From Tetramitus jugosus (Eukaryota > Protista > Heterolobosea): DNA of 64,000 bases. The stretch spans positions 372,001 to 436,000 of the forward strand of contig OW569358.1 of NCBI GenBank assembly GCA_937625935.1, written 5' to 3'. The notes under the pieces are model-generated. The model made no database searches and was not told the DNA's origin. It worked only from the letters and a program-made list of their open reading frames with translations. The position numbers were made by a program, and so were the translations under genes. Shown here piece after piece: positions 9,960 through 19,395 of this stretch (its first letter is position 1; the number at the start of each line of letters is the position of its first letter).

Positions 9960-11129
9960 TTTTTTTTTTTTTTAATACAACAAATGGTGCGTGAGCACCA
10001 CGTTGCGGAACTTTTATTTTTCTTTTGTGTGAGAGCAGGCTTGCCTGCTCTCAATTTTCTAACATGATGTGGTGCTTGCCCAGTGGAGTGGCAGGCCTAC
10101 GCAACAGGATTCATTCTCTTTCTGGAATGTTGTTTTGATCCCTTCTTCAGGGATTCGTTGCGAGGGCCTCCACTACCGTCTGGAGCACCACTGGTGAGGT
10201 CAGATGGCTCCATAGTCCTAGCCAGTTGGTAGGATCTACGGAGAGCACCTGACTTGATGCTGGCCAACCTGGCCGGGATCTTGTTGGCAGCAGTGTCACC
10301 AACGGTGACACATGCTGATCGCTTCTTGTTTTCGTTGAGTTGGGGACTCTGTAACTCGCAGTCGGAGTTACTGAGATCCAACTCAACTGGATCTTCTACG
10401 GTGGTTGTGCTTCTTGCACGGTCCACCATGATTGCTCGGGCAGCAATCTCCCCGCGAAGGGAATCCGGTTGACGGAAGCCATTTCTTTTAACACACTGAC
10501 TTGGTGGCGCAGGTCGTCCACCACAGCCAGGAGTTCTTGGTACATCTTTGTCAGCCTCTTGCTGACAGCCTTGACAGGGTCACGTGGGCGTGGAAGGAAG
10601 CGCTTTGCTTCCACCTCCACTGGCATGGATTGAACGTTCCGAAGCAAAGCTTCGGCATACGTTTCAGACTCCATCACAACAAAGGCAGTGTTGTGCTTCT
10701 TGAGCACATTCTTGACCTTTGTTGTGCCAAGCATGGCCTTGATATCGTCCTCCGTCTTACCTTTGACGCCGTGGAGGACGACCTTCTTGGCACAATCGAC
10801 GTTGTGCTTGAGTGCTGCCTTGCAGCCACTCATCTTCTTGTTGCGGTTGAAGGTTTCAACAAATGGGTAAATGTTGTCATCAACAACAGTTACCCACGCA
10901 ACAAACCTCTTGGGGCCCTTCTTGATGACTTGGACCCTGGTGAGCAAATCACCAAACTCCAAGCCAATCTTCTTGGCCAAGGCAGCCTTAGGAGAGTCAT
11001 CGCACTTTCCAGTGATGATGACCTCCTTGCTGCTTGGAGCAGTTCCTCTTGGTGCTGTGGTCCACACAGCATAGCGTGGATTCTCATACTCACGAACAAC
11101 AGGGGTGTGTGTTCGTTTTTTCATCGGCG
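9960..11129 (-). mobile_element. Non-autonomous ORF1-only non-LTR retroelement (copy A), 59 bp upstream of tRNA-Asn
   Basis: A14 tail at 9960-9973, 21-bp TSD, ORF1 from ATG 11124, 3' stem-loop, no RT. Confidence 0.8.
10097..11124 (-). CDS. ORF1-like protein: two RRM-like units + coiled coil; C-terminal part (10097-10429) in a shifted frame
   Basis: KEVIITG...RFVAWVTV and KKVVLHG...TAFVVMES patterns, followed by a heptad segment KRLTKMYQELLAVVDDLRHQVSVLKE. Confidence 0.65.
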
Positions 11130-11188
11130 TTTTTTCTGCGTTTTTGGTGCCACAATCTGTCCCCATTTTCTATTATTACATGCACAAT

Positions 11189-11261
11189 TCCTCCATGGCT
11201 CAGTTGGTAGAGCGTCAGGCTGTTAACCTGCAGGTCGTTGGTTCGAGCCCAACTGGAGGAG
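11189..11261 (+). tRNA. trnN: tRNA-Asn (GTT)
   Basis: TCCTCCA/TGGAGGA acceptor stem, D arm GCTC..GAGC, anticodon loop CTGTTAA, TTCGA T-loop, TTTT terminator downstream. Confidence 0.97.
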
Positions 11262-12463
11262 ACCCATATTTTAGTTATTCGAAAATTCTCAACTGTTTGT
11301 ACGATGTGAAGCAGAGATCTTAGGATCGAGATGTATCAAATAGATAGTAAGAATGGTAATGAGTGATTGATTTAGCAATCTGGAGAATGTTTCTATCCAA
11401 TTCCCTTTGTCATTTTGTGTTATGTCGTTGATCGTTTTTGTTGGTACGCTTCTATTCGCTCGTGTTTTATAGTCTCCTCCACATGTGCTACAGACTAATG
11501 CCATGGGCTCGTGGTTATGTTGATTCCTTGCTCTGAATTTTCGTACTGATGTTAGTTTCATGGATTTTATGGAGTTGCTCGATGCCGTTATGTATCGTTG
11601 TAATTGAGGTTTGTTCGATACCAATTTATGATTGACAACGAATAATTGATCAGCAATTAAATCTTATTCGTCAATATGAATTTATAATAGTGAATAATTT
11701 ACCACTCATGTCACCTTTCGTTTTTGCAGTATAATTATTTTGTTCTATTAATTAGTTTGGAAGATTACTCAGTGAGGAGCCTATTGAGGATTTGGGCCAT
11801 TTGACACAAATGTCCGATAAGGACTTCGAGGAGTTTGTTGAACAAGTAAACTGTTTCGCATTCATGCGATACGCAGTACGAAAGAAGGAACTCCGCTGCG
11901 AAGGGCAGGACCTCTCTTGTCAACCCCAAGGTACTGAGCTTAAAGGATTTGCTAGGGAAACTTACTCAAGCCTTGAACAAGAAAGTGTCATGTACTCAGT
12001 TGGCTCGTTTCTCTCACCATTGGATCCATGGAGGATTTGAAGGCTTTCCCCTACTGGTTGTGGGCCTACAATGGAACAATAAACAAACCACAAGTATGAC
12101 TTTTCAAAACACTTTTACACAATGAATTCATGATTTACTCAAACTCTTCTCATACGACATCACCAGGAAATCTTTTAAAAATCGCGTTCTTACTGGCATG
12201 GGCCAAATAAAGAAGCGACGATGTTGATAATAGATGGTCTTCTAGCTACGATCGCCAGTTCGCGTTTGTCCATGAGTTAAACGCAATTGTTAGCGAAATG
12301 CGAAGATTTGAACTCATTCTGAGTGATGAATCCAAATGTTTCACTTTGAAAACCAAATCTTAAATGTACTGGATCATCCCAACAATTATATGGTTTTGGG
12401 TCAGAACAAAGAGATGTGTTTACTATTGACAAGCATCTGATGGATTTGTCATTGCTTAAGTCC

Positions 12464-12838
12464 TCTATCCTCCTATTTTTGGGAGACAATCCGACAAGCA
12501 ACAATCTCGTTGTATACTCATTGTAGACTGCCTACCTCAACATCATAAGGAAGTCAACTACGTGAGCCCTCGTTTTATTATTGACCCAACCAGTTAATGT
12601 TGTAGCTCCGAGATCCTCCTTCACTGATTCTACTTTTGTATCCTTCAACAGAAGACTTACGTTGTATGCGTCAAGTATACAATGAGTGTGGAGACTGCTC
12701 AGCAATATGGTAGCAAGATGTTCTCTTTCTTTTGATTTTTGATGGTATTTTATAGTGTGTTTATTGTAAAACTCGTTGTAAATAAAAAAGTCCGTCAAAA
12801 AGCTCAGGCGGAGACAAAAGGATTATCGCCCACCGAGG
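12464..12838. mobile_element. Internally deleted copy of the GIY-YIG/RT cassette
   Basis: 12464-12699 matches 12985-13226, and 12696-12838 matches 15181-15332. The two parts join at a TGCT microhomology. Confidence 0.85.
12827..12838 (-). repeat. Duplicated 3'-terminal 12 nt of tRNA-Lys
   Basis: CGCCCACCGAGG is identical to 15321-15332. Confidence 0.85.
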
Positions 12839-13052
12839 TTTATTTAGCCGCCAAATAAAGCGTTAATTGTTTTACAGTTTTTTTTTTTTTTTTTTTTAGA
12901 GAAAAAAAAATCTCTAGTACAACTCCTTCACAGAATTGTAAACTTTCATAATTGCTGAATGGTTTTTGTGGTAATTGTATATCTTCTATCCTCCTATATT
13001 TTGGAGACAATCCGACAAGCAACAATCTCGTTGTATACTCATTGTATACTGT

Positions 13053-13781
13053 CTACCTCAACATCATGGAGTTAAGGAAGTCAACTACCTGAGCCCTCGT
13101 TTTATTAATGACCCAACCATTCAATGTTGTAGCTCCGAGATCCTCCCTCACTGATTCTACTGTTGTATCCTTCAACAGAAGACCCACATTGTATGCGTCA
13201 AGTATACAATGAGTGTGGAGACTGCTGGCGAGGAACTCTTCGAACCATGATCGCGGAGACTCAGTAAAATACAACAACACTCTCTCAATACCAGGAACCG
13301 AGACAACCATAAGATGAGGATGTTGTGGTAATGAGACCTGCGGTACTTGATTCACAAAAATGGAGAAATACCTCGATCGAACAGGTACAAAAGCATTGCT
13401 ATCCAATTGCATTCCAAAGCAATGTTTCAAGCACCAGATTGCCTCCTCTCTATTGGTGTCAAATACCTCCCCAGCAATAAGCCTGTTACGCAGCCAACTG
13501 TGAATGAATCGTTCCCAAGCAACACAATTATTTACAACAAACACATCCAAGACCACATCCAAAACCAGCACCTTGGTCAACAACTTCCTCAATCTATTGT
13601 ACATATCTGTACTTTGACCTATTTTAGCACCTGCACACTCTGTGGATGAGAGGATATATATGCATTCTTTGACTGATTTGAGAGTTTTTCTTGGTGCAAC
13701 CTCACCATTGATCGTTATCAAGCAATTAACTGCAGACATAAAAAACAAAAGAACAAGTAATTGTGATTGTTTATTGGACAT
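13053..13781 (-). CDS. T5orf172/MUG113-type GIY-YIG domain protein
   Basis: CIYIL...AKIGQSTDMYNRLRKL...WERFIHSWL...GEVF fits the YI..KIG.S..R..L..E..IH..GEWF pattern. Confidence 0.8.
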   Translation of the reverse strand: MSNKQSQLLVLLFFMSAVNCLITINGEVAPRKTLKSVKECIYILSSTECAGAKIGQSTDMYNRLRKLLTKVLVLDVVLDVFVVNNCVAWERFIHSWLRNRLIAGEVFDTNREEAIWCLKHCFGMQLDSNAFVPVRSRYFSIFVNQVPQVSLPQHPHLMVVSVPGIERVLLYFTESPRSWFEEFLASSLHTHCILDAYNVGLLLKDTTVESVREDLGATTLNGWVINKTRAQVVDFLNSMMLR

Positions 13782-13982
13782 TGAAACAACAGTTTATTTA
13801 AATAGGAATGTAGAGGACTTGATGGGTTGATGTTTTGATGTATTACTTTGATGAGGAACTGTTTTTGTTTGTTTGTTAGTTTGTTTGGTTTTATTTAAGG
13901 AGTTGATGTGATGTAAGATAATTGCTTTTGAAAAAAAAACAACAATAGTAATGGAAATAAGTGGCGTGAAGCAGTAGGATAC

Positions 13983-15227
13983 TTGATTGGAGCACTTAAT
14001 GCCATAGTTGATGCCCAGAGACTCTCCTCTATGGAATCAAGAAATGATCAACCTCAGGAGCAACAGTGTGTCCCGGATTTAACATCCACCATCCAGATGT
14101 TGCAAAGAAATGAGCAAGCTACAAGGAATGATCAGATGAATGTTGTCGAGGACACTACCTATGTGGTTGAGGCAAGAGAAACAAGGAAAGGCAAGGGAAA
14201 GGGGAAGAACAGGGCTGGTATGATCAGTCGACCATTCTGGCAATCGGCCGAGGAGATTCTCAAGACTGGGATGACTGTTAGATTCTATCAGCCCGAATCT
14301 GTTGTCCGTAAGAAGTTGTCTCGAATGATCATCAACAAGATCAAAGGAGAGATGTGCCAGGTGATGGATTCTCGAGTGAACGAGTATGTAGCTAGCGGTG
14401 TGTTGATAGAGATACCAAAGGAGGAAGCGTATTTTATTGCTCCAATGAGAATCATACCCAGAGAGTCTGATCCTTCTCGACCCAGAGAAATCTTGGATTT
14501 CACTGAGCTCAACAAGTACATTCTAGAGGCGGATTGCAAACTACCAACACGCAAAGATCTAGTGTTGTTGGTCGAAAGATACTCCTATGCGGCCTCGATT
14601 GATATCAAATCGTGTTACACCAACATCAAATTGGATGAGGCATTTCAGCCATATTGCTGTATTGGGTGGAGGAGCAAGGTCTACAAATTTACTCGAGTCC
14701 CTTTTGGAATCAAGTGTGCACCGGCATGTTGCCAGCTGGTCACAAGCCATCTCTGCGAGGAAACTACAATAGTATATCTTGATGACTTCCTTTTGTTGGG
14801 CAACTCGGAGCAACAAGTATTATCTCGAGTTCGAGACCAAGTGACCACTCTCGAAGATAGAGGATTGCCTATCAATGTTACCAAGTCCATTCTGGTTCCT
14901 CAGCAAGAGTTAGAGTTTAGCGGATACAAACTCTGTTTTGGAGGTGAAGTCAAGGGTGTTTACACTACAGATAAGCACTTGATGGATCTATCGTTGATGA
15001 TCAAACTGATTTTGACGCAGGAGAGCGTTGAATTGAAGACCTGGCAAAGGTTCATGGGTAAGTATAACTGGTGCAGGGCTCTAAAGGAGGATGAGAAGGT
15101 GCATTCGAAGTTGGTTGCGCTGATGAATGAGCGAGACACCAACTCTGATAGAATTGTAGTCGACCACGTCGCTAGAGCAATGCTCAGCAATATGGTAGCA
15201 AGATGTTCTCTTTCTTTTGATTTTTGA
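13983..15227 (+). CDS. Reverse transcriptase, DIRS/LTR-type, no recognisable RNase H
   Basis: [40 protein letters not shown] and [21 protein letters not shown] (DIRS1-like spacing). Start codon uncertain. Confidence 0.9.
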
Positions 15228-15320
15228 TTGTATTTTATGGTGTGTTTATTGTAAATACATTGTAAAACTCGTTGTAAATAAAAAGTCCGTCAAAAAGCTC
15301 AGACGGAGACAAAAGGACAT

Positions 15321-15393
15321 CGCCCACCGAGGGGCTCGAACCCTCGACCACAAGGTTAAGAGCCTTGCGCTCTACCGACTGAGCTAGACGGGC
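15321..15393 (-). tRNA. trnK: tRNA-Lys (CTT)
   Basis: GCCCGTCTAGCTCAGTCGGTAGAGCGCAAGGCTCTTAACCTTGTGGTCGAGGGTTCGAGCCCCTCGGTGGGCG folds as a cloverleaf. Confidence 0.97.
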
Positions 15394-16516
15394 TTGGATA
15401 TTCACTAAAAAATAAAAAAATACAAAAAACTCGGCCAAAAGCAAAAACAAAAACGCGTTCGTCAATTGTCCGCTTATGCATTTTTAGACTCTAAAATAAA
15501 TGAATCCTTGCCCGCAATTGTTTCGAATTTGATTCCAGAAGAGTGTGCATTTCCGAAAAAGCACAAAAAAGAGGGCTACATCATTTTTCATGGGCATCAT
15601 TTTTCTAGCAACAAATGGAGTTCTGAGAGAGTTAACATACAGGGGAAAGTTAATCTTTGGAGACGATCATAACACCGTGATTTGCACAGATCGAAGCGCG
15701 GAAAGTAAACAGTGCTAATTTTAGAGTATTGATATAGCCAACTCGTTGCAAACAAGGAGAACTTTCACAAATCCATTCTGAACCCTGGCTACTCCCACAA
15801 CGCTTTCATTACACCGTCGGTAAAACTTATCAATCTGTGATCCACTTTTTTCGACCGAATTTTCGAGAAGGTATGGAAAGTGACTTTTGATCTTCCTGTT
15901 GTAGTTGTTGTTTTTTTAGCATGAATCATCATCAGCAACAATTTCAAGTTCTTTTTGTGTGAAGATCTCCTTCTCTTCTCTCAAAAATGGATTCCAAATT
16001 TTTGAATATACTTCTCACTTCTCAGTAGTCTTTGGTTCCTGAATAACATTTGATACTCTTTGCTTCAGCTCACGACGGTACATGTGAACCGTATCTGGAG
16101 TGACCCCGATATCTCCAGTCTCGCTCAATAAGTCTATGAATTTTCTCGCATACATGAAAACATACAAACCCGTATGGTTGGCAATTAACCAAGTGCTCCA
16201 ATCAAGTATCCTACTGCTTCAAGCCACTTGTTTTCCATTACCTGTTGTTTTGTTCCAAAATCATTTATCTTACATGTGAATCAAGTGTCACAGGTCTCAC
16301 ATCTCACTCCAAAATATAGGAGGAGATCTCATTACCACAAAAACCATTCAACAACCAAGATAATTTACAATTCTTTGGAGGATCTCTAGTTCCTAGGATA
16401 AATCACCTTTTTGTTAGGAAAAAGTATTCAAAACTGAAACTTTTGGATTCCATCACTCATAATGAGCTTCAATAGACGCCACGGCATTATTGAAAATTTT
16501 TGACTAAAATATGGGT

Positions 16517-16589
16517 CTCCTCCAGTTGGGCTCGAACCAACGACCTGCAGGTTAACAGCCTGACACTCTACCAACTGAGCCATGGAGGA
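16517..16589 (-). tRNA. trnN: tRNA-Asn (GTT), second copy
   Basis: Identical to 11189-11261 except one D-stem C>T, which still allows a G-U pair. Confidence 0.95.
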
Positions 16590-16625
16590 ATTGTGCATAC
16601 ATTCTACAAAATTAGAAAATCGGAC

Positions 16626-18759
16626 GGGTCGTATTTCAGGGTTCCGTTCCTTGTTCCTCATGTTCAAACAACGTTCCCGTCCCTTGCAACAGAATCTAAC
16701 TTTACAATGAATGAATCTTCAATTCACTATAAATACTGAGATTCTGCGTTCCCTTGTGTTCAAATAACCAAAAAAATGAACACACAACTCAAGATCCCAC
16801 ACAATTCTCACAACTCCCTTTTGGTCAATTACTCCCAACAATCATACCAACCCGAGATCAGCAAGAGAATGAAGAAGAAGATTGTTTGATCGAGACAGTG
16901 GTGTCGTATGAGCAACCAAGTGACGATGGAGATGAATCAGCATTTGAAGAAGATGAGGAAGAGGAAGAGGACACTTCACAAAACCTGTGGAGAGTTTGTG
17001 AACCAAAACCATATCAACCAGTTGGTAAAGAACACACTAAGCAGTACACTTTTGCAGAGCACATATTTAACCATCATCAAACAAACAAACACTCTTCCAC
17101 ATACACATGTAAATTCAAAAGACCACCATATTCCTGTCGAGCCATGTTGAAGCAGATCTTGGAATCAGATCAATGGTTATACAAAGGTAAACACAATCAT
17201 CCTACACCACAATTACTAAATAGAACAAAGGAGAAGAAGCCATCATTCTCTGATCTCATTCATAGCAGACAAGAGGAATTGAAAGAATATGTCATTTCTA
17301 ACAAGCGTGTGAGAAATGCAAAGGCTGTTTGCTATGCACTGAACAAGGATGTAAATCCAAATGATCTTCAACAGTATATATTTCCAGAGCAAGTACATGA
17401 AGCGAGACATAAGTTTGTTCACACAGCATCAATATCTGACTGGAACGATCTTTACAGCAGAAAAGAGTTTACTCATACGAGTCTGGGACAAGCATACCTC
17501 AGAACTCTTCATTTGTATCCAGAGTTCTTAATCCAATACGCAGCTGACTGGCAAATAGATCTTTTGAAATCTGTTACTCAGGAGGATCAGTTATTCGTAG
17601 ATGGAACATTCAATGTCTGTCCTATGAATATTGAGCAGATGGTCACACTACTAGTTTAGAAGAAAACATGGAACCACGCATTGCCTGTAGTACATGCACT
17701 ACTTCAAAGAAGACAAGAAAGCACCTACGTCCATATGTGGAATCATATTATCAGACTTGCTCCAGAACTTCAGAATGTCAATAATCTTTGTATATCTGTA
17801 GATTTTGAAGTTGCAATGCATAATGCTATTAAGAAAGTTATCCCAGCCTCAAAGATCGTAGGTTGTGAGTTTCATTTGAAGCAAGCAATCTTAAGATATA
17901 CATGCAAAGGCAATGCAGGAAAGACAGTGAGTTCAGATATGAAAGAAAAGCTGAACAGAGCAGATCTCATTTCGAGGATATCAGCATTAGTTAACTGTCG
18001 GTCTGAGGAAGAATTCAGAGTGCTGAGGTCATCATTCATTAACTATTATTCTGTGAAACAAGGCTATAGTCGATTTGTTAGCTATATGGTAAACACTTGG
18101 TTAGGGTCTTCTGATGATGCATCAGTTACCAGATTTCCCTATACTCTTTGGTCCAGATGTGCAATGCCCTCGTTAAATCTGCACATGACTAACAACATTG
18201 CTGAAACTCTTCACAAAGAGATCAACAGTAAGTTCACAAGCAAACCACAACTGAAACATTGCATTAAGCTTCTTAAGGAGATAGAAGAGGACTCCTTGCT
18301 TAAAAAGAGACGTATGGAAAGCAACGTACAAGTTTCAACATCAGAACAACCTTCTGCAGTTGTCAGTACAGCAAATTCTAAAAAGAGATCGCGTCCATCT
18401 TCGAATAACTCACTAGTATTGCCTCCACAGAAGAAAGCAAAGAATAGTCAAAGTGGCTCTACACGTGCAATTCCATCCCAGTTTCTTCACTCTTTTCAAG
18501 TTGCACCTGTGAGCACTCCAAGCACTGCAATCTCCAGATCCTATTTGCCAAATGCTCCAACTTACTTTCCTCCACCTAATTTCAACAACAATCCACAATA
18601 TATCCATCAAATTAACTACTGGAACAATATGAATTTGGCTGTAAACGGGCAGTGGAACAAGAACATGCAATAAAATCTCGTATTCCTAAATTTGGTGGAT
18701 TCCTCAAGACTTTACAACACTGAACAAATTATTGGGGACGGAACGCTGAGACACGACCC
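16626..18759 (+). mobile_element. Mutator-like (MULE) DNA transposon
   Basis: TIRs 16626-16650 and 18735-18759 match at 21/25 positions and start GGGTCGT. TSD ATCGGAC at 16619-16625 and 18760-18766. Confidence 0.92.
16754..18673 (+). pseudogene. MULE transposase interrupted by one in-frame TAG (17657-17659)
   Basis: FLYWCH/WRKY-like YTC...C.A...HNH, then FVDGTF, VDFEVA, GCEFH and TNNIAE (DDE triad + CxxH). Both ORFs are in the same frame. Confidence 0.9.
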
Positions 18760-18785
18760 ATCGGACAGATTGGAGCAAAGAAAAA

Positions 18786-19395
18786 CGCCGATGAAAAAAC
18801 GAACACACACCCCTGTTGTTCGTGAGTATGAGAATCCACGCTATGCTGTGTGGACCACAGCACCAAGAGGAACTGCTCCAAGCAGCAAGGAGGTCATCAT
18901 CACTGGAAAGTGCGATGACTCTCCCAAAGCTGCCTTGGCCAAGAAGATTGGCTTGGACTTTGGTGATTTGCTCACCAGGGTCCAAGTCATCAAGAAGGAC
19001 CCCAAGAGGTTTGTTGCGTGGGTAACTGTTGTTGATGACAACATTTACCCATTTGTTGAATCCTTCAACCGCAGCAAGAAGATGAGTGGCGCTCAAGCAC
19101 AATGTTGATTGTGCCAAGAAGGTCGTCCTCCACGGTGTCAAAGGTAAGACGGAGGACGACATCAAGGCCATGCTCGGCACAACAAAGGTCAAGAATGTAC
19201 TCAAGAAGCACAACAATGCCTTTGTTGTGATGGAGTCTGAAACGTATGCCGAAGCTTTGCTTCCACCCACTGGCGTGGCTTGAACGCCCACGTGATCCTG
19301 TCAAGGCTGTCAGCAAGAGGTTGACCAAGATGCATCAAAAACTGGCTGTGGAGGACGACGTGTTAAAAGAAATGGCTTCTGTCAATCGGATTCCT
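18786..19395 (+). mobile_element. Retroelement copy C (frameshifted ORF1), upstream of the second tRNA-Asn
   Basis: Near-identical to copy A from CGCCGATGAAAAAACG onward, with small deletions. Confidence 0.85.

Follow-up and report, generated by a model that had tools for sequence, protein, structure and literature searches.

A two-gene reverse-transcriptase element at the edges of intact tRNA genes in Tetramitus jugosus

In the window analysed here (64,000 nucleotides of the heterolobosean Tetramitus jugosus, contig OW569358.1, positions 372,001 to 436,000), a compact unit of two divergent genes, one for a T5orf172/GIY-YIG protein on the minus strand and one for a YLDD reverse transcriptase (RT) on the plus strand, abuts an intact tRNA-Lys(CTT) gene and is bounded at its other end by a copy of the last 12 nucleotides of that gene. 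Units of the same family recur at this exact position in other tRNA-Lys genes of the genome, and related subfamilies occupy the edges of tRNA-Trp and tRNA-Asn genes. What sets the orders of retrotransposons apart is their enzymes and the chemistry of their integration (LTR elements with integrase, DIRS with tyrosine recombinase, Penelope with a fused GIY-YIG nuclease, LINEs with APE or REL endonucleases), and the present family, with its retrovirus-type RT, its separate homing-type nuclease and nothing else, fits none of them. We lean, by a modest degree of belief, towards reading it as a site-specific retroelement family that carries its own flank and is joined to tRNA gene edges under the guidance of homology. 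As far as our literature search shows, it is the first eukaryotic retroelement found to enter a tRNA gene and to make it whole again from an edge copy and a substitute flank of its own. To our knowledge, restoration of a tRNA gene by an element's own edge copy has so far been seen in bacterial integrative elements. The family is also a clean example of mobile DNA surviving in a gene-dense genome of 26 Mb.

Structure of the unit in the window

Coordinates of the unit and its surroundings are collected in Table 1. The original prediction placed two divergent open reading frames here, a T5orf172-like one at 13053-13781 (minus strand) and a YLDD RT at 13983-15227 (plus strand), and Pfam searches confirmed both. 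The first matches T5orf172 (PF10544) with 24.9 bits, where the cut-off is 20 (E=3e-5), and scores just under the cut-off of the MUG113 profile. Both frames had been called intact, which holds for the RT frame, open over 414 codons, but not for its start: in the window a deletion of 4 bases directly behind the ATG at 13953, from which the 99% identical copy of contig C30 is read, puts that ATG out of frame.

Table 1. Features of the window unit and its immediate neighbourhood
Feature	Position	Strand	Remarks
RT-coding fragment, short, from a diverged family member	12405-12460	+	leftover at the stack's outer edge; resembles RT frame near 14955-15005
Older, internally deleted unit	12461-12826	+	part of left region fused to last ~140 nt of right end; directly left of stub
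12-nt stub, copy of last 12 nt of tRNA-Lys(CTT)	12827-12838	-	identical stub ahead of 7 more left ends elsewhere in the genome
Full-length unit	12839-15320	+	2482 bp; 99.2% identical to contig C30 copy (blastn, junction alignment)
Left terminus	12839-12859	-	palindrome, 7-bp stem; AATAAA on - strand; sequence identical in 6 other left ends
T5orf172/GIY-YIG-like protein gene	13053-13739	-	228 aa from the ATG (at 13739) that starts this frame in other copies; frame open to 13781
Spacer between divergent genes	13782-13982	.	same layout in relatives L059, L061, L062, L073
Reverse transcriptase frame	13983-15227	+	Pfam RVT_1 E=1e-18; YLDD; fingers, palm, thumb
Right terminus	15277-15320	+	AATAAA 15277-15282; 6-bp-stem hairpin 15286-15307; tRNA-Lys trailer mimic 15310-15320
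Intact tRNA-Lys(CTT)	15321-15393	-	ARAGORN; Rfam 66.7 bits; its last 12 nt (15321-15332) = second repeat copy
Inverted remnant of a related unit, heavily deleted	16191-16400	-	~115 bp from tRNA-Asn; no precise junction; inverted repeats

The 12-mer CGCCCACCGAGG, present at 12827-12838 and again at 15321-15332, where it ends the intact tRNA-Lys as had been predicted, is the sole exact terminal direct repeat of the unit; the chance expectation for a 12-mer repeating within 2.5 kb is ~1e-4. The 73-mer of the tRNA gene matches the tRNA-Lys(CTT) genes of the other compared loci exactly. Its terminator had been said to fall inside the end of the cassette, and it does so: the final 11 nt of the unit mimic a tRNA-Lys trailer, TTTT included, with CCTTTTG at 15310-15316. 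A role of tRNA-Lys as RT primer, with the 12-mer as primer-binding site, was considered and rejected: CAT, rather than the TGG that would pair with CCA, stands ahead of the 12-mer, and in the Trp type it is the 5' end of the tRNA, in sense orientation, that the unit bears.

Past the left terminus lies a T-run (12879-12899) whose length varies between copies. From its sequence and strand, the AATAAA of the left terminus is likely to serve as the nuclease mRNA's poly(A) signal, and the spacer between the genes is presumed to act as a bidirectional promoter region. No promoter for a unit-length RNA is evident in the unit, because both genes point outward from this central spacer. Pol III read-through from the tRNA gene was rejected as a source of template RNA, as a T9 run inside the unit (the complement of 13930-13938) would terminate it.

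Profile and repeat searches find these two reading frames only, in agreement with the earlier statement that the unit lacks gag, RNase H, tyrosine recombinase, integrase and LTRs. Repeat and Pfam searches of the unit returned no LTRs, gag, protease or integrase; no RNase H profile matches the RT; neither frame matches Phage_integrase, and none of the related contigs is hit by a tyrosine recombinase (YR) seed. Inverted terminal repeats, split direct repeats with an internal complementary region and a gag-like frame were likewise not found in the unit, and no hammerhead ribozyme matched it at E up to 1.

The older unit to the left was delimited by blastn, which aligns 12461-12826 to unit positions 144-388 and 2343-2479 at 92% and 89%, and the repeat search agrees. 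The window also contains a large inverted duplication around two tRNA-Asn genes.

Recurrence at tRNA genes

The genome comparison covered 58 loci, merged by coordinates, together with pattern counts. The same junctions occur at the same position in 8 of 26 tRNA-Lys(CTT) genes and in two tRNA-Lys(TTT) genes, and the other 18 tRNA-Lys(CTT) genes carry no unit. Left and right junctions are identical on C8, C15, C23, C30, C35 and C40, and near-exact left ends (n=7) are all at occupied tRNA-Lys loci. Units stack up to three or four deep, as on C30, with the 12-mer between them, and the outer flanks differ from locus to locus. The predicted outcome of insertion (a tRNA left intact, its end duplicated, and units stacked at one site) is thus seen directly. 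Nor is the 12-mer the breakpoint of a one-off tandem duplication, as had been feared, since the window-type junction is found again at 8 further places. Each subfamily has repeats of one length, and these are always exact; no A-tail is seen at unit junctions, and defective copies have internal deletions with both ends retained. The C15 and C30 units are 99.2% identical, and the sequences suggest recent activity of the family.

These shared junctions might alternatively reflect segmental duplication, in which tRNA-Lys genes were copied together with an adjoining cassette that has no mobility of its own. Such genes and their short trailers are indeed multi-copy and similar, and the inverted duplication in the window is a case of large-scale copying. 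Nevertheless, we judge this explanation very improbable: it sits badly with the 18 tRNA-Lys(CTT) genes without a unit and the locus-specific outer flanks, with the stub found between units in stacks, with the presence of units at tRNA-Lys(TTT) genes of different sequence, and with related units at Trp and Asn genes and in contigs from other organisms.

The two genes travel together. Both are present at every locus with a reasonably complete copy, and four contigs, independent of one another and drawn from metagenomes or assemblies, carry both as well, so that the concern that the frames might occur apart is not borne out. The unit is likewise not a piece of a canonical DIRS element, being complete at 2.48 kb between precise junctions, with neither YR nor RNase H. 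In contigs from run X1 and from a soil metagenome (X4), unit positions 15281 and 12840 are connected via 11 other letters, a junction that the assembly does not contain.

More distant relatives keep the two-gene layout down to 37% RT identity and differ in target. In the Trp subfamily (RT identity ~65%) the target is the first 14 nt of tRNA-Trp, of which a 14-nt stub remains at the other end of the unit. In an Asn-type relative from a metagenome (RT identity 55%) it is the last 23 nt of tRNA-Asn; the complete tRNA stands on one side and a 23-nt stub followed by the native trailer on the other, and the unit is reversed in orientation relative to the tRNA. The sequence after the RT in L062 ends in an apparent tRNA 5' half, for which there is no Rfam call. 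Nucleases that are 62% identical to one another go with unrelated targets, used in either orientation.

The two proteins

The predicted structure of the RT (pLDDT 77.5) finds its best folds in the RTs of CaMV, Ty3, foamy virus, HIV-1 and MMLV; the alignment with solved RTs spans ~330 columns of their polymerase part, and the protein stops after the thumb. The nearest sequences, like the nearest folds, are those of CaMV, Ty3 and retroviruses. The RT is of the retrovirus/LTR/caulimovirus type, within which it is a clade of its own (support 99) that falls outside the integrase-bearing clade. Two YR-linked RTs, P0006 and P0113, share with the family a large unresolved assemblage, in which they are not its sisters. 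The tree was built without curated DIRS, Ngaro or VIPER references, and the label "DIRS-like", given in the original prediction, is not established. The frames next to the sister RT clades (L068-L072) match no Pfam family and so lend the RT no label, DIRS or other. In one distant relative (26% identity) a tyrosine recombinase frame follows the RT.

Protein language-model neighbours of the nuclease all belong to T5orf172/MUG113 clusters. Residues Y28, K39-I40-G41, R49, E76 and G90-E91 are invariant across nine relatives at 21-96% identity, and by analogy with the family we assume them to be catalytic. The protein has two GIY-YIG-like halves (model pLDDT 82). The top VIA-align matches of model residues 22-114 are HIGLE, Slx1, T4 EndoII and the UvrC N-domain, at Z 4.3-5.8, and residues 140-213 match I-TevI at Z 4.2, all below the caution level of 8. 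Foldseek returned no match to the model, and GIY-YIG folds were seen only with the exhaustive aligner.

Nuclease dN/dS is 0.08-0.29, and dN of the RT (0.32-0.85) is far under its saturated synonymous divergence in all lineages. Judged by such substitution patterns, both proteins are under purifying selection. The RT values bear on the possibility of homing at the DNA level, in which the nuclease would cut empty tRNA genes and the break would be repaired by copying an occupied locus, with homology supplied by the tRNA body on one side and by stub and trailer on the other, the RT having another role or being a passenger. T5orf172/GIY-YIG genes are classic free-standing homing endonucleases of phages (PMC10448857); internal deletions with both ends retained are typical of interrupted gap repair, and homology is present on both sides of the unit. 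Nevertheless, a passenger RT would not be expected to be conserved to this degree and to be always linked to the nuclease, the homology on the stub side is only ~23 bp, and homing usually destroys its site, which here is rebuilt and re-used. We consider homing improbable.

The flank of the rebuilt gene and a proposed mode of joining

An exact copy of the trailer ATGTCCTTTTG stands at 4 of 8 occupied tRNA-Lys(CTT) sites compared with 1 of 18 others (Fisher p=0.02); occupied sites keep their trailer constant, whereas those of empty sites vary. In the youngest C30 unit the trailers on the two sides differ while the 12-mers are identical, and the idea that trailer and 12-mer together form a target-site duplication of 23 bp was therefore rejected for the Lys type. 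The Trp type repeats ~59 bp including ~45 nt of flank, of which 5 of 45 positions differ between the two sides of one unit, the 14-mer being identical. Compared with the sequence upstream of the window's clean tRNA-Trp, this flank is identical at 30 of 45 positions, a score reached by 4 of 2000 shuffles, and the same tRNA-proximal 11 nt are found at the three tRNA-Trp genes that lie at or near Trp-type elements. From these comparisons, the flank beside the rebuilt tRNA appears to be borne by the element, as a TTTT trailer in the Lys type and as ~45 nt of upstream-like sequence in the Trp type. At the two tRNA-Lys(TTT) sites, where left ends are missing, the trailer looks native (AAC...) and not element-type, and an element-borne flank would there call for a sublineage of its own or for a crossover lying further out.

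Under the flank-carrying, homology-guided joining that we favour, the T5orf172 nuclease would break the edge of a tRNA gene. The cDNA made by the RT, circular or terminally redundant, would bear a copy of that edge and its flank where its two ends join, much like the core of an attP site, and would be joined into the broken gene through this short homology. The unit would thus end up flanked at either side by the edge segment, with a tRNA gene still whole, and would bring the substitute flank with it: a TTTT terminator in 3'-end insertions and the ~45 nt of upstream-like sequence in the 5'-end insertion. A target so rebuilt could be hit again, giving head-to-tail stacks. If target choice lies mostly in the target copy carried by the element, this would explain how nucleases as similar as 62% identity serve unrelated targets in either orientation. 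Several observations stand against the proposed mechanism, among them the lack of RNase H and of an evident promoter for a unit-length RNA, the modest structural matches of the nuclease (Z <6), the native-looking trailers at the tRNA-Lys(TTT) sites and the reversed orientation of the Asn type. For the Lys type, a plain 12-bp staggered cut would leave the same final structure.

Alternatively, the units may enter by target-primed reverse transcription of the kind used by Penelope-like or R2 elements, with staggered nicks of 12 bp (Lys), 14 bp (Trp) and 23 bp (Asn); the repeats would then be true target-site duplications, the RT would copy RNA onto the nick, and the trailer-like end would be just part of the element. 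This accommodates the constant length and exactness of the repeats in each subfamily, and priming from a nick just beyond the trailer fits the native-looking tRNA-Lys(TTT) trailers; a GIY-YIG nuclease with an RT is, moreover, the Penelope toolkit (PMC8557442). Nevertheless, the RT is not of the Penelope or LINE type, there are neither poly(A) tails nor 5' truncations and defective copies keep both ends, and the ~59-bp Trp repeat differs between its sides in the flank but not in the 14-mer. A unit-length RNA with one gene in antisense would be needed here too. We therefore think this route unlikely, if the most credible of the alternatives, and retain homology-guided joining as the working model.

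A broader reading, which we offer tentatively and hold with somewhat less than even confidence, is that the family represents an unrecognised order of eukaryotic retroelements, with an LTR/pararetrovirus-type RT, a free-standing GIY-YIG nuclease, an att-like target core carried by the element, and a gene that is always repaired. Such a core might allow retargeting to a new tRNA by the exchange of a few dozen terminal bases. The subfamilies with different exact targets (Lys 3', Trp 5', Asn 3') make it testable whether target choice lies in the nuclease or in the terminal bases; if the latter, the unit would be a very small, programmable and gene-sparing integration system.

Full-text literature searches found no account of an element combining an RT with T5orf172, or of a retroelement that rebuilds a tRNA gene, and known systems resemble the family in part. 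Prokaryotic integrative elements (phages and ICEs) carry a copy of a tRNA gene end that rebuilds the gene, leaving a partial copy at the far junction, and re-use of the site yields tandem arrays. The family likewise bears a tRNA gene end, rebuilds the whole tRNA and re-uses the site, but the prokaryotic systems, found in bacteria and archaea, consist of DNA and integrate by tyrosine or serine integrases, whereas the present family is eukaryotic and has an RT and a hydrolytic nuclease in place of a recombinase.

Penelope-like elements also rely on a GIY-YIG-superfamily nuclease rather than on an integrase or an AP/REL endonuclease. Their RT, however, belongs with telomerase and the nuclease is fused to it in one frame (PMC8557442); in the present family the RT is retrovirus/LTR-type, the nuclease is a separate, divergently transcribed gene of T5orf172 type, and insertion is strictly at tRNA gene edges. 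With DIRS and other YR elements the family shares an RT from the broad non-integrase, LTR-related group and the stacking of copies into one another, and a target-site duplication is unnecessary if integration uses a circle junction. DIRS-1 targets its own copies (PMC5006619), in contrast to the tRNA genes targeted here. From LINEs and R2-like non-LTR retrotransposons the family differs in RT type, in the absence of an A-tail at its junctions and in the absence of 5' truncation.

Multi-copy tRNA genes serve retrotransposons of gene-dense genomes as a safe harbour (PMC5006619), and the family shares this choice of target with TRE5/TRE3, DGLT-A, Skipper-2, Ty1 and Ty3. These elements insert at a distance, for example ~50 bp upstream for TRE5-A, which targets TFIIIC/IIIB (PMC3159450), whereas the present units sit within the edge of the gene, at a single fixed nucleotide and in either orientation relative to tRNA transcription. 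Dada elements, DNA transposons with a DDE transposase, insert sequence-specifically inside tRNA and snRNA genes, with 6-7 bp duplications inside small-RNA genes and reliance on high gene copy number (PMC3706591). One Dada insertion site lies inside a U6 gene, and in the tRNA figure the anticodon is marked (PMC3706591). The present family, in contrast, is an RT element that duplicates the gene edge, and the gene stays whole.

The two-gene unit and its copies at tRNA-Lys genes

The genome holding the window is eukaryotic and comprises 26.35 Mb in 56 contigs, with a G+C content of ~41%. The last 12 nt of tRNA-Lys(CTT), CGCCCACCGAGG on the + strand (hereafter the 12-mer), occur at the end of the intact gene and again in a stub at 12827-12838, confirming the 12-nt repeat of the original prediction. 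The 12-mer is the sole exact terminal direct repeat in the unit region, and no LTRs, inverted terminal repeats or hammerhead ribozyme were found there. On the tRNA strand, ATGTCCTTTTG lies directly 3' of the gene, so the terminator falls inside the end of the unit, as had also been proposed.

Features of the two-gene unit and its tRNA gene (window coordinates)
Feature	Position	Strand	Description
tRNA-Lys(CTT)	15321-15393	-	ARAGORN; Rfam 66.7 bits
Unit, 2482 bp	12839-15320		Between two 12-mer copies; two divergent ORFs
Nuclease ORF	13053-13781	-	Pfam T5orf172, above curated threshold
Reverse transcriptase (RT) ORF	13983-15227	+	RVT_1 E=1e-18; YLDD present
Older deleted unit	12461-12826		Directly left of the stub

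The two genes diverge from a central 200-bp spacer and are closed by AATAAA at the extremes of the unit. Going by other copies, the likeliest start codon of the nuclease is the ATG at 13739. Both ORFs had been described as intact; the RT frame is indeed open, but the RT ATG used in a 99%-identical copy on contig C30 is out of frame in the window because of a 4-base deletion. The older unit keeps part of the left region and the last ~140 nt, with ~1.95 kb between them gone.

Six-frame searches of the whole genome gave 36 RT and 28 nuclease matches, which merge into ~16 regions spread over 12 contigs; every reasonably complete copy has both genes. We merged the loci and aligned their ends, covering flanks to ~1.5 kb. 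On contigs C8, C15 (which holds the window at 372001-436000), C23, C30, C35 and C40, the right end meets the 3' end of tRNA-Lys(CTT) at the identical nucleotide, and the left end starts TTTATTTAGCC... with the 12-mer just before it. On C30, 3 or 4 units stand head to tail with a 12-mer between neighbors. All near-exact left ends (7/7) and right ends (4/4) in the genome lie within these tRNA-Lys loci, and recent copies are 99.2% identical. The recurrence of exact junctions on several contigs and the co-occurrence of the genes exclude both a single tandem duplication event and the idea that the two ORFs occur independently; duplication of the unit together with its tRNA gene is a less likely account of these copies. 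Eight of the 26 tRNA-Lys(CTT) genes are occupied, and degraded units sit at the equivalent position of two tRNA-Lys(TTT) genes, whose last 12 nt differ from those of the CTT gene. Metagenomes from soil, freshwater and groundwater contain near-identical sequence, indicating that the host is an environmental protist. In place of the Lys 12-mer, an older left end on C23 (202150-202166), 84% identical, has ...GGGACCAAGG before it, which may be a stub derived from a different tRNA or one that has decayed.

Subfamilies, targets and flanks

A Trp type on contig C16 shares ~65% RT and ~62% nuclease identity with the Lys type. Its boundaries are GGGGGGTTAGCTCA, the first 14 nt of tRNA-Trp, and the intact tRNA-Trp lies on the RT side, as in the Lys type, but is co-directional with the RT. 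In an Asn type (55% RT identity), found on metagenome contigs L059 and L073 from two samples, a complete tRNA-Asn (Rfam 67.5 bits) adjoins the nuclease side, and beyond the RT side stand a 23-nt copy of the tRNA-Asn 3' end and then a TTTT trailer that looks native. An apparent tRNA 5' half stands at the end of L062, a contig of an NCBI assembly, ~240 bp past the RT stop; it received no Rfam call, since the contig includes only ~28 nt of it. Relatives with as little as 37% RT and 21% nuclease identity (contig L061) still have the divergent nuclease/RT pair. Common to the subfamilies is insertion in the terminal 12-23 bp of a tRNA gene, with that segment duplicated and a whole gene left. Unit orientation relative to tRNA transcription varies among them, which favors direct recognition of the DNA sequence over tethering by the Pol III machinery.

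The exact trailer ATGTCCTTTTG follows 4/8 occupied tRNA-Lys(CTT) genes versus 1/18 others (Fisher p=0.02), the rest of which carry variant trailers. The youngest C30 unit has identical 12-mers but unequal trailers on its two sides; the duplication is therefore 12 bp and the trailer moves with the unit, and a 23-bp duplication in the Lys type is ruled out. In the Trp type, ~45 nt beside the tRNA are homologous to the sequence upstream of a clean tRNA-Trp in the window (30/45 positions, a score reached by 4/2000 shuffles). The tRNA-proximal 11 nt recur at the three tRNA-Trp genes at or near Trp-type elements, and the segment also precedes both stubs with 2-5 differences. From these comparisons, each element seems to bring along its own copy of the gene edge together with a functional flank, which is a terminator in 3' insertions and upstream sequence in the 5' case. 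The two tRNA-Lys(TTT) genes, where the units lack their left ends, have a native-looking trailer. This fits an element-borne flank poorly and would be accounted for by a more distant crossover or by a separate sublineage.

Two further observations concern Trp-type loci. A single open frame on C14 (166176-167204; 1501-2529 of locus L010), a deletion derivative within a multi-copy Trp-type stack, joins the nuclease's C-terminal half to the core of the RT. At C16:358760-358790, the T-rich 3' end of a non-LTR-like element, similar in kind to one at 9960-9990 in the window, truncates the right end of a unit; different tRNA-associated elements thus insert into each other.

The two proteins and possible routes of integration

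Residues Y28, K39-I40-G41, R49, E76 and G90-E91 are invariant in nine nuclease relatives, and nuclease dN/dS is 0.08-0.29. The AlphaFold model (pLDDT 82) consists of two alpha/beta halves. For residues 22-114 the best matches are GIY-YIG nucleases (HIGLE, Z 5.8; Slx1, 5.0; T4 EndoII, 4.3; UvrC, 4.3), and residues 140-213 match I-TevI (Z 4.2). These modest values agree with the Pfam and language-model assignments in pointing to a GIY-YIG-type nuclease.

The RT model (pLDDT 77.5) best matches the CaMV, Ty3, foamy virus, HIV-1 and MMLV RTs over ~330 columns and stops after the thumb, leaving no RNase H. An exhaustive search of 1.8 billion proteins gave only 8 RT cluster representatives at E<=1e-30. 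A tree of 155 RT domains recovers the family as a single clade (support 99) that falls outside the Ty3-like clade with integrase. The nearest sister RTs have unannotated surroundings, and two tyrosine recombinase-linked RTs fall in the same large, unresolved assemblage. Between subfamilies, RT dN is 0.32-0.85 and synonymous sites are saturated. No integrase or recombinase was found among unit ORFs, nor any tyrosine recombinase in related contigs.

On a 10-kb metagenome contig (L067), a same-clade RT (890-2119; 43% identical) has a zinc finger-like segment rich in Cys and His at its N-terminus. A eukaryotic IML1/DEPDC5 gene stands ~3.8 kb away, separated from the RT by two unannotated ORFs, and the stretch of contig covered contains no tRNA or recognizable T5orf172 gene. 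This may be a relative of different architecture or a domesticated one.

The family resembles Penelope-like elements in combining an RT with GIY-YIG, DIRS elements in being non-integrase and possibly circle-based, and bacterial tRNA-integrating elements in target restoration and stacking, but it lacks the defining features of all three, as well as those of LTR and LINE elements, and differs from Dada transposons. Whereas the tRNA-targeting elements TRE5, DGLT-A, Ty1 and Ty3 of compact genomes insert beside tRNA genes (PMC5006619), this family inserts into them. No earlier account of this layout emerged from our literature search.

Insertion is precise, recurrent, tRNA-edge-specific, gene-sparing and repeatable, and the unit has two conserved genes and recent copies. 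We infer that the nuclease would break the tRNA gene edge and that a cDNA, carrying edge and flank where its two ends join, would integrate through this short homology, much like an attP/attB pair. After this, one side would read tRNA, element flank and unit, and the other stub plus native flank. The main rival, target-primed reverse transcription from staggered nicks, predicts an identical final Lys structure; DNA-only homing is less likely. Integration of cDNA by homology would explain why the flanks are element-type, why the Trp repeat is long (~59 bp), why both orientations occur and why unrelated targets are served by nucleases that are closely related. Because both genes diverge and end in AATAAA at the unit extremes, a unit-length template RNA would, speculatively, have to be read through a junction between tandem units or within a circle, in the manner of DIRS elements and pararetroviruses.

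Contigs from two sequencing runs of independent studies (X1 and X4, the latter a soil metagenome) join 15281, in the right-end AATAAA region, to 12840 at the left end through 11 other letters ending GCCCG. This join is absent from the assembly and could be a variant junction of other strains or the junction of an extrachromosomal form. In X1, which has many short variant contigs over the unit, summed contig depth across 12906-15320 is ~10 to 40x that of 12300-12900, which may reflect copy number or expression.

Other mobile elements around the tRNA cluster

The stack of Lys elements in the window lies entirely between the arms of a large inverted duplication (10532-11275 and 16503-19343; 88-99% identical), which takes in both tRNA-Asn genes and the ORF1-like retroelement directly upstream of each. 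Two adjacent ORFs at 16754-18673, a few hundred bases from a tRNA-Asn, encode a MULE-type transposase (PF10551, E=4e-8; weak FLYWCH). The tRNA cluster of the window is crowded with several unrelated mobile elements.
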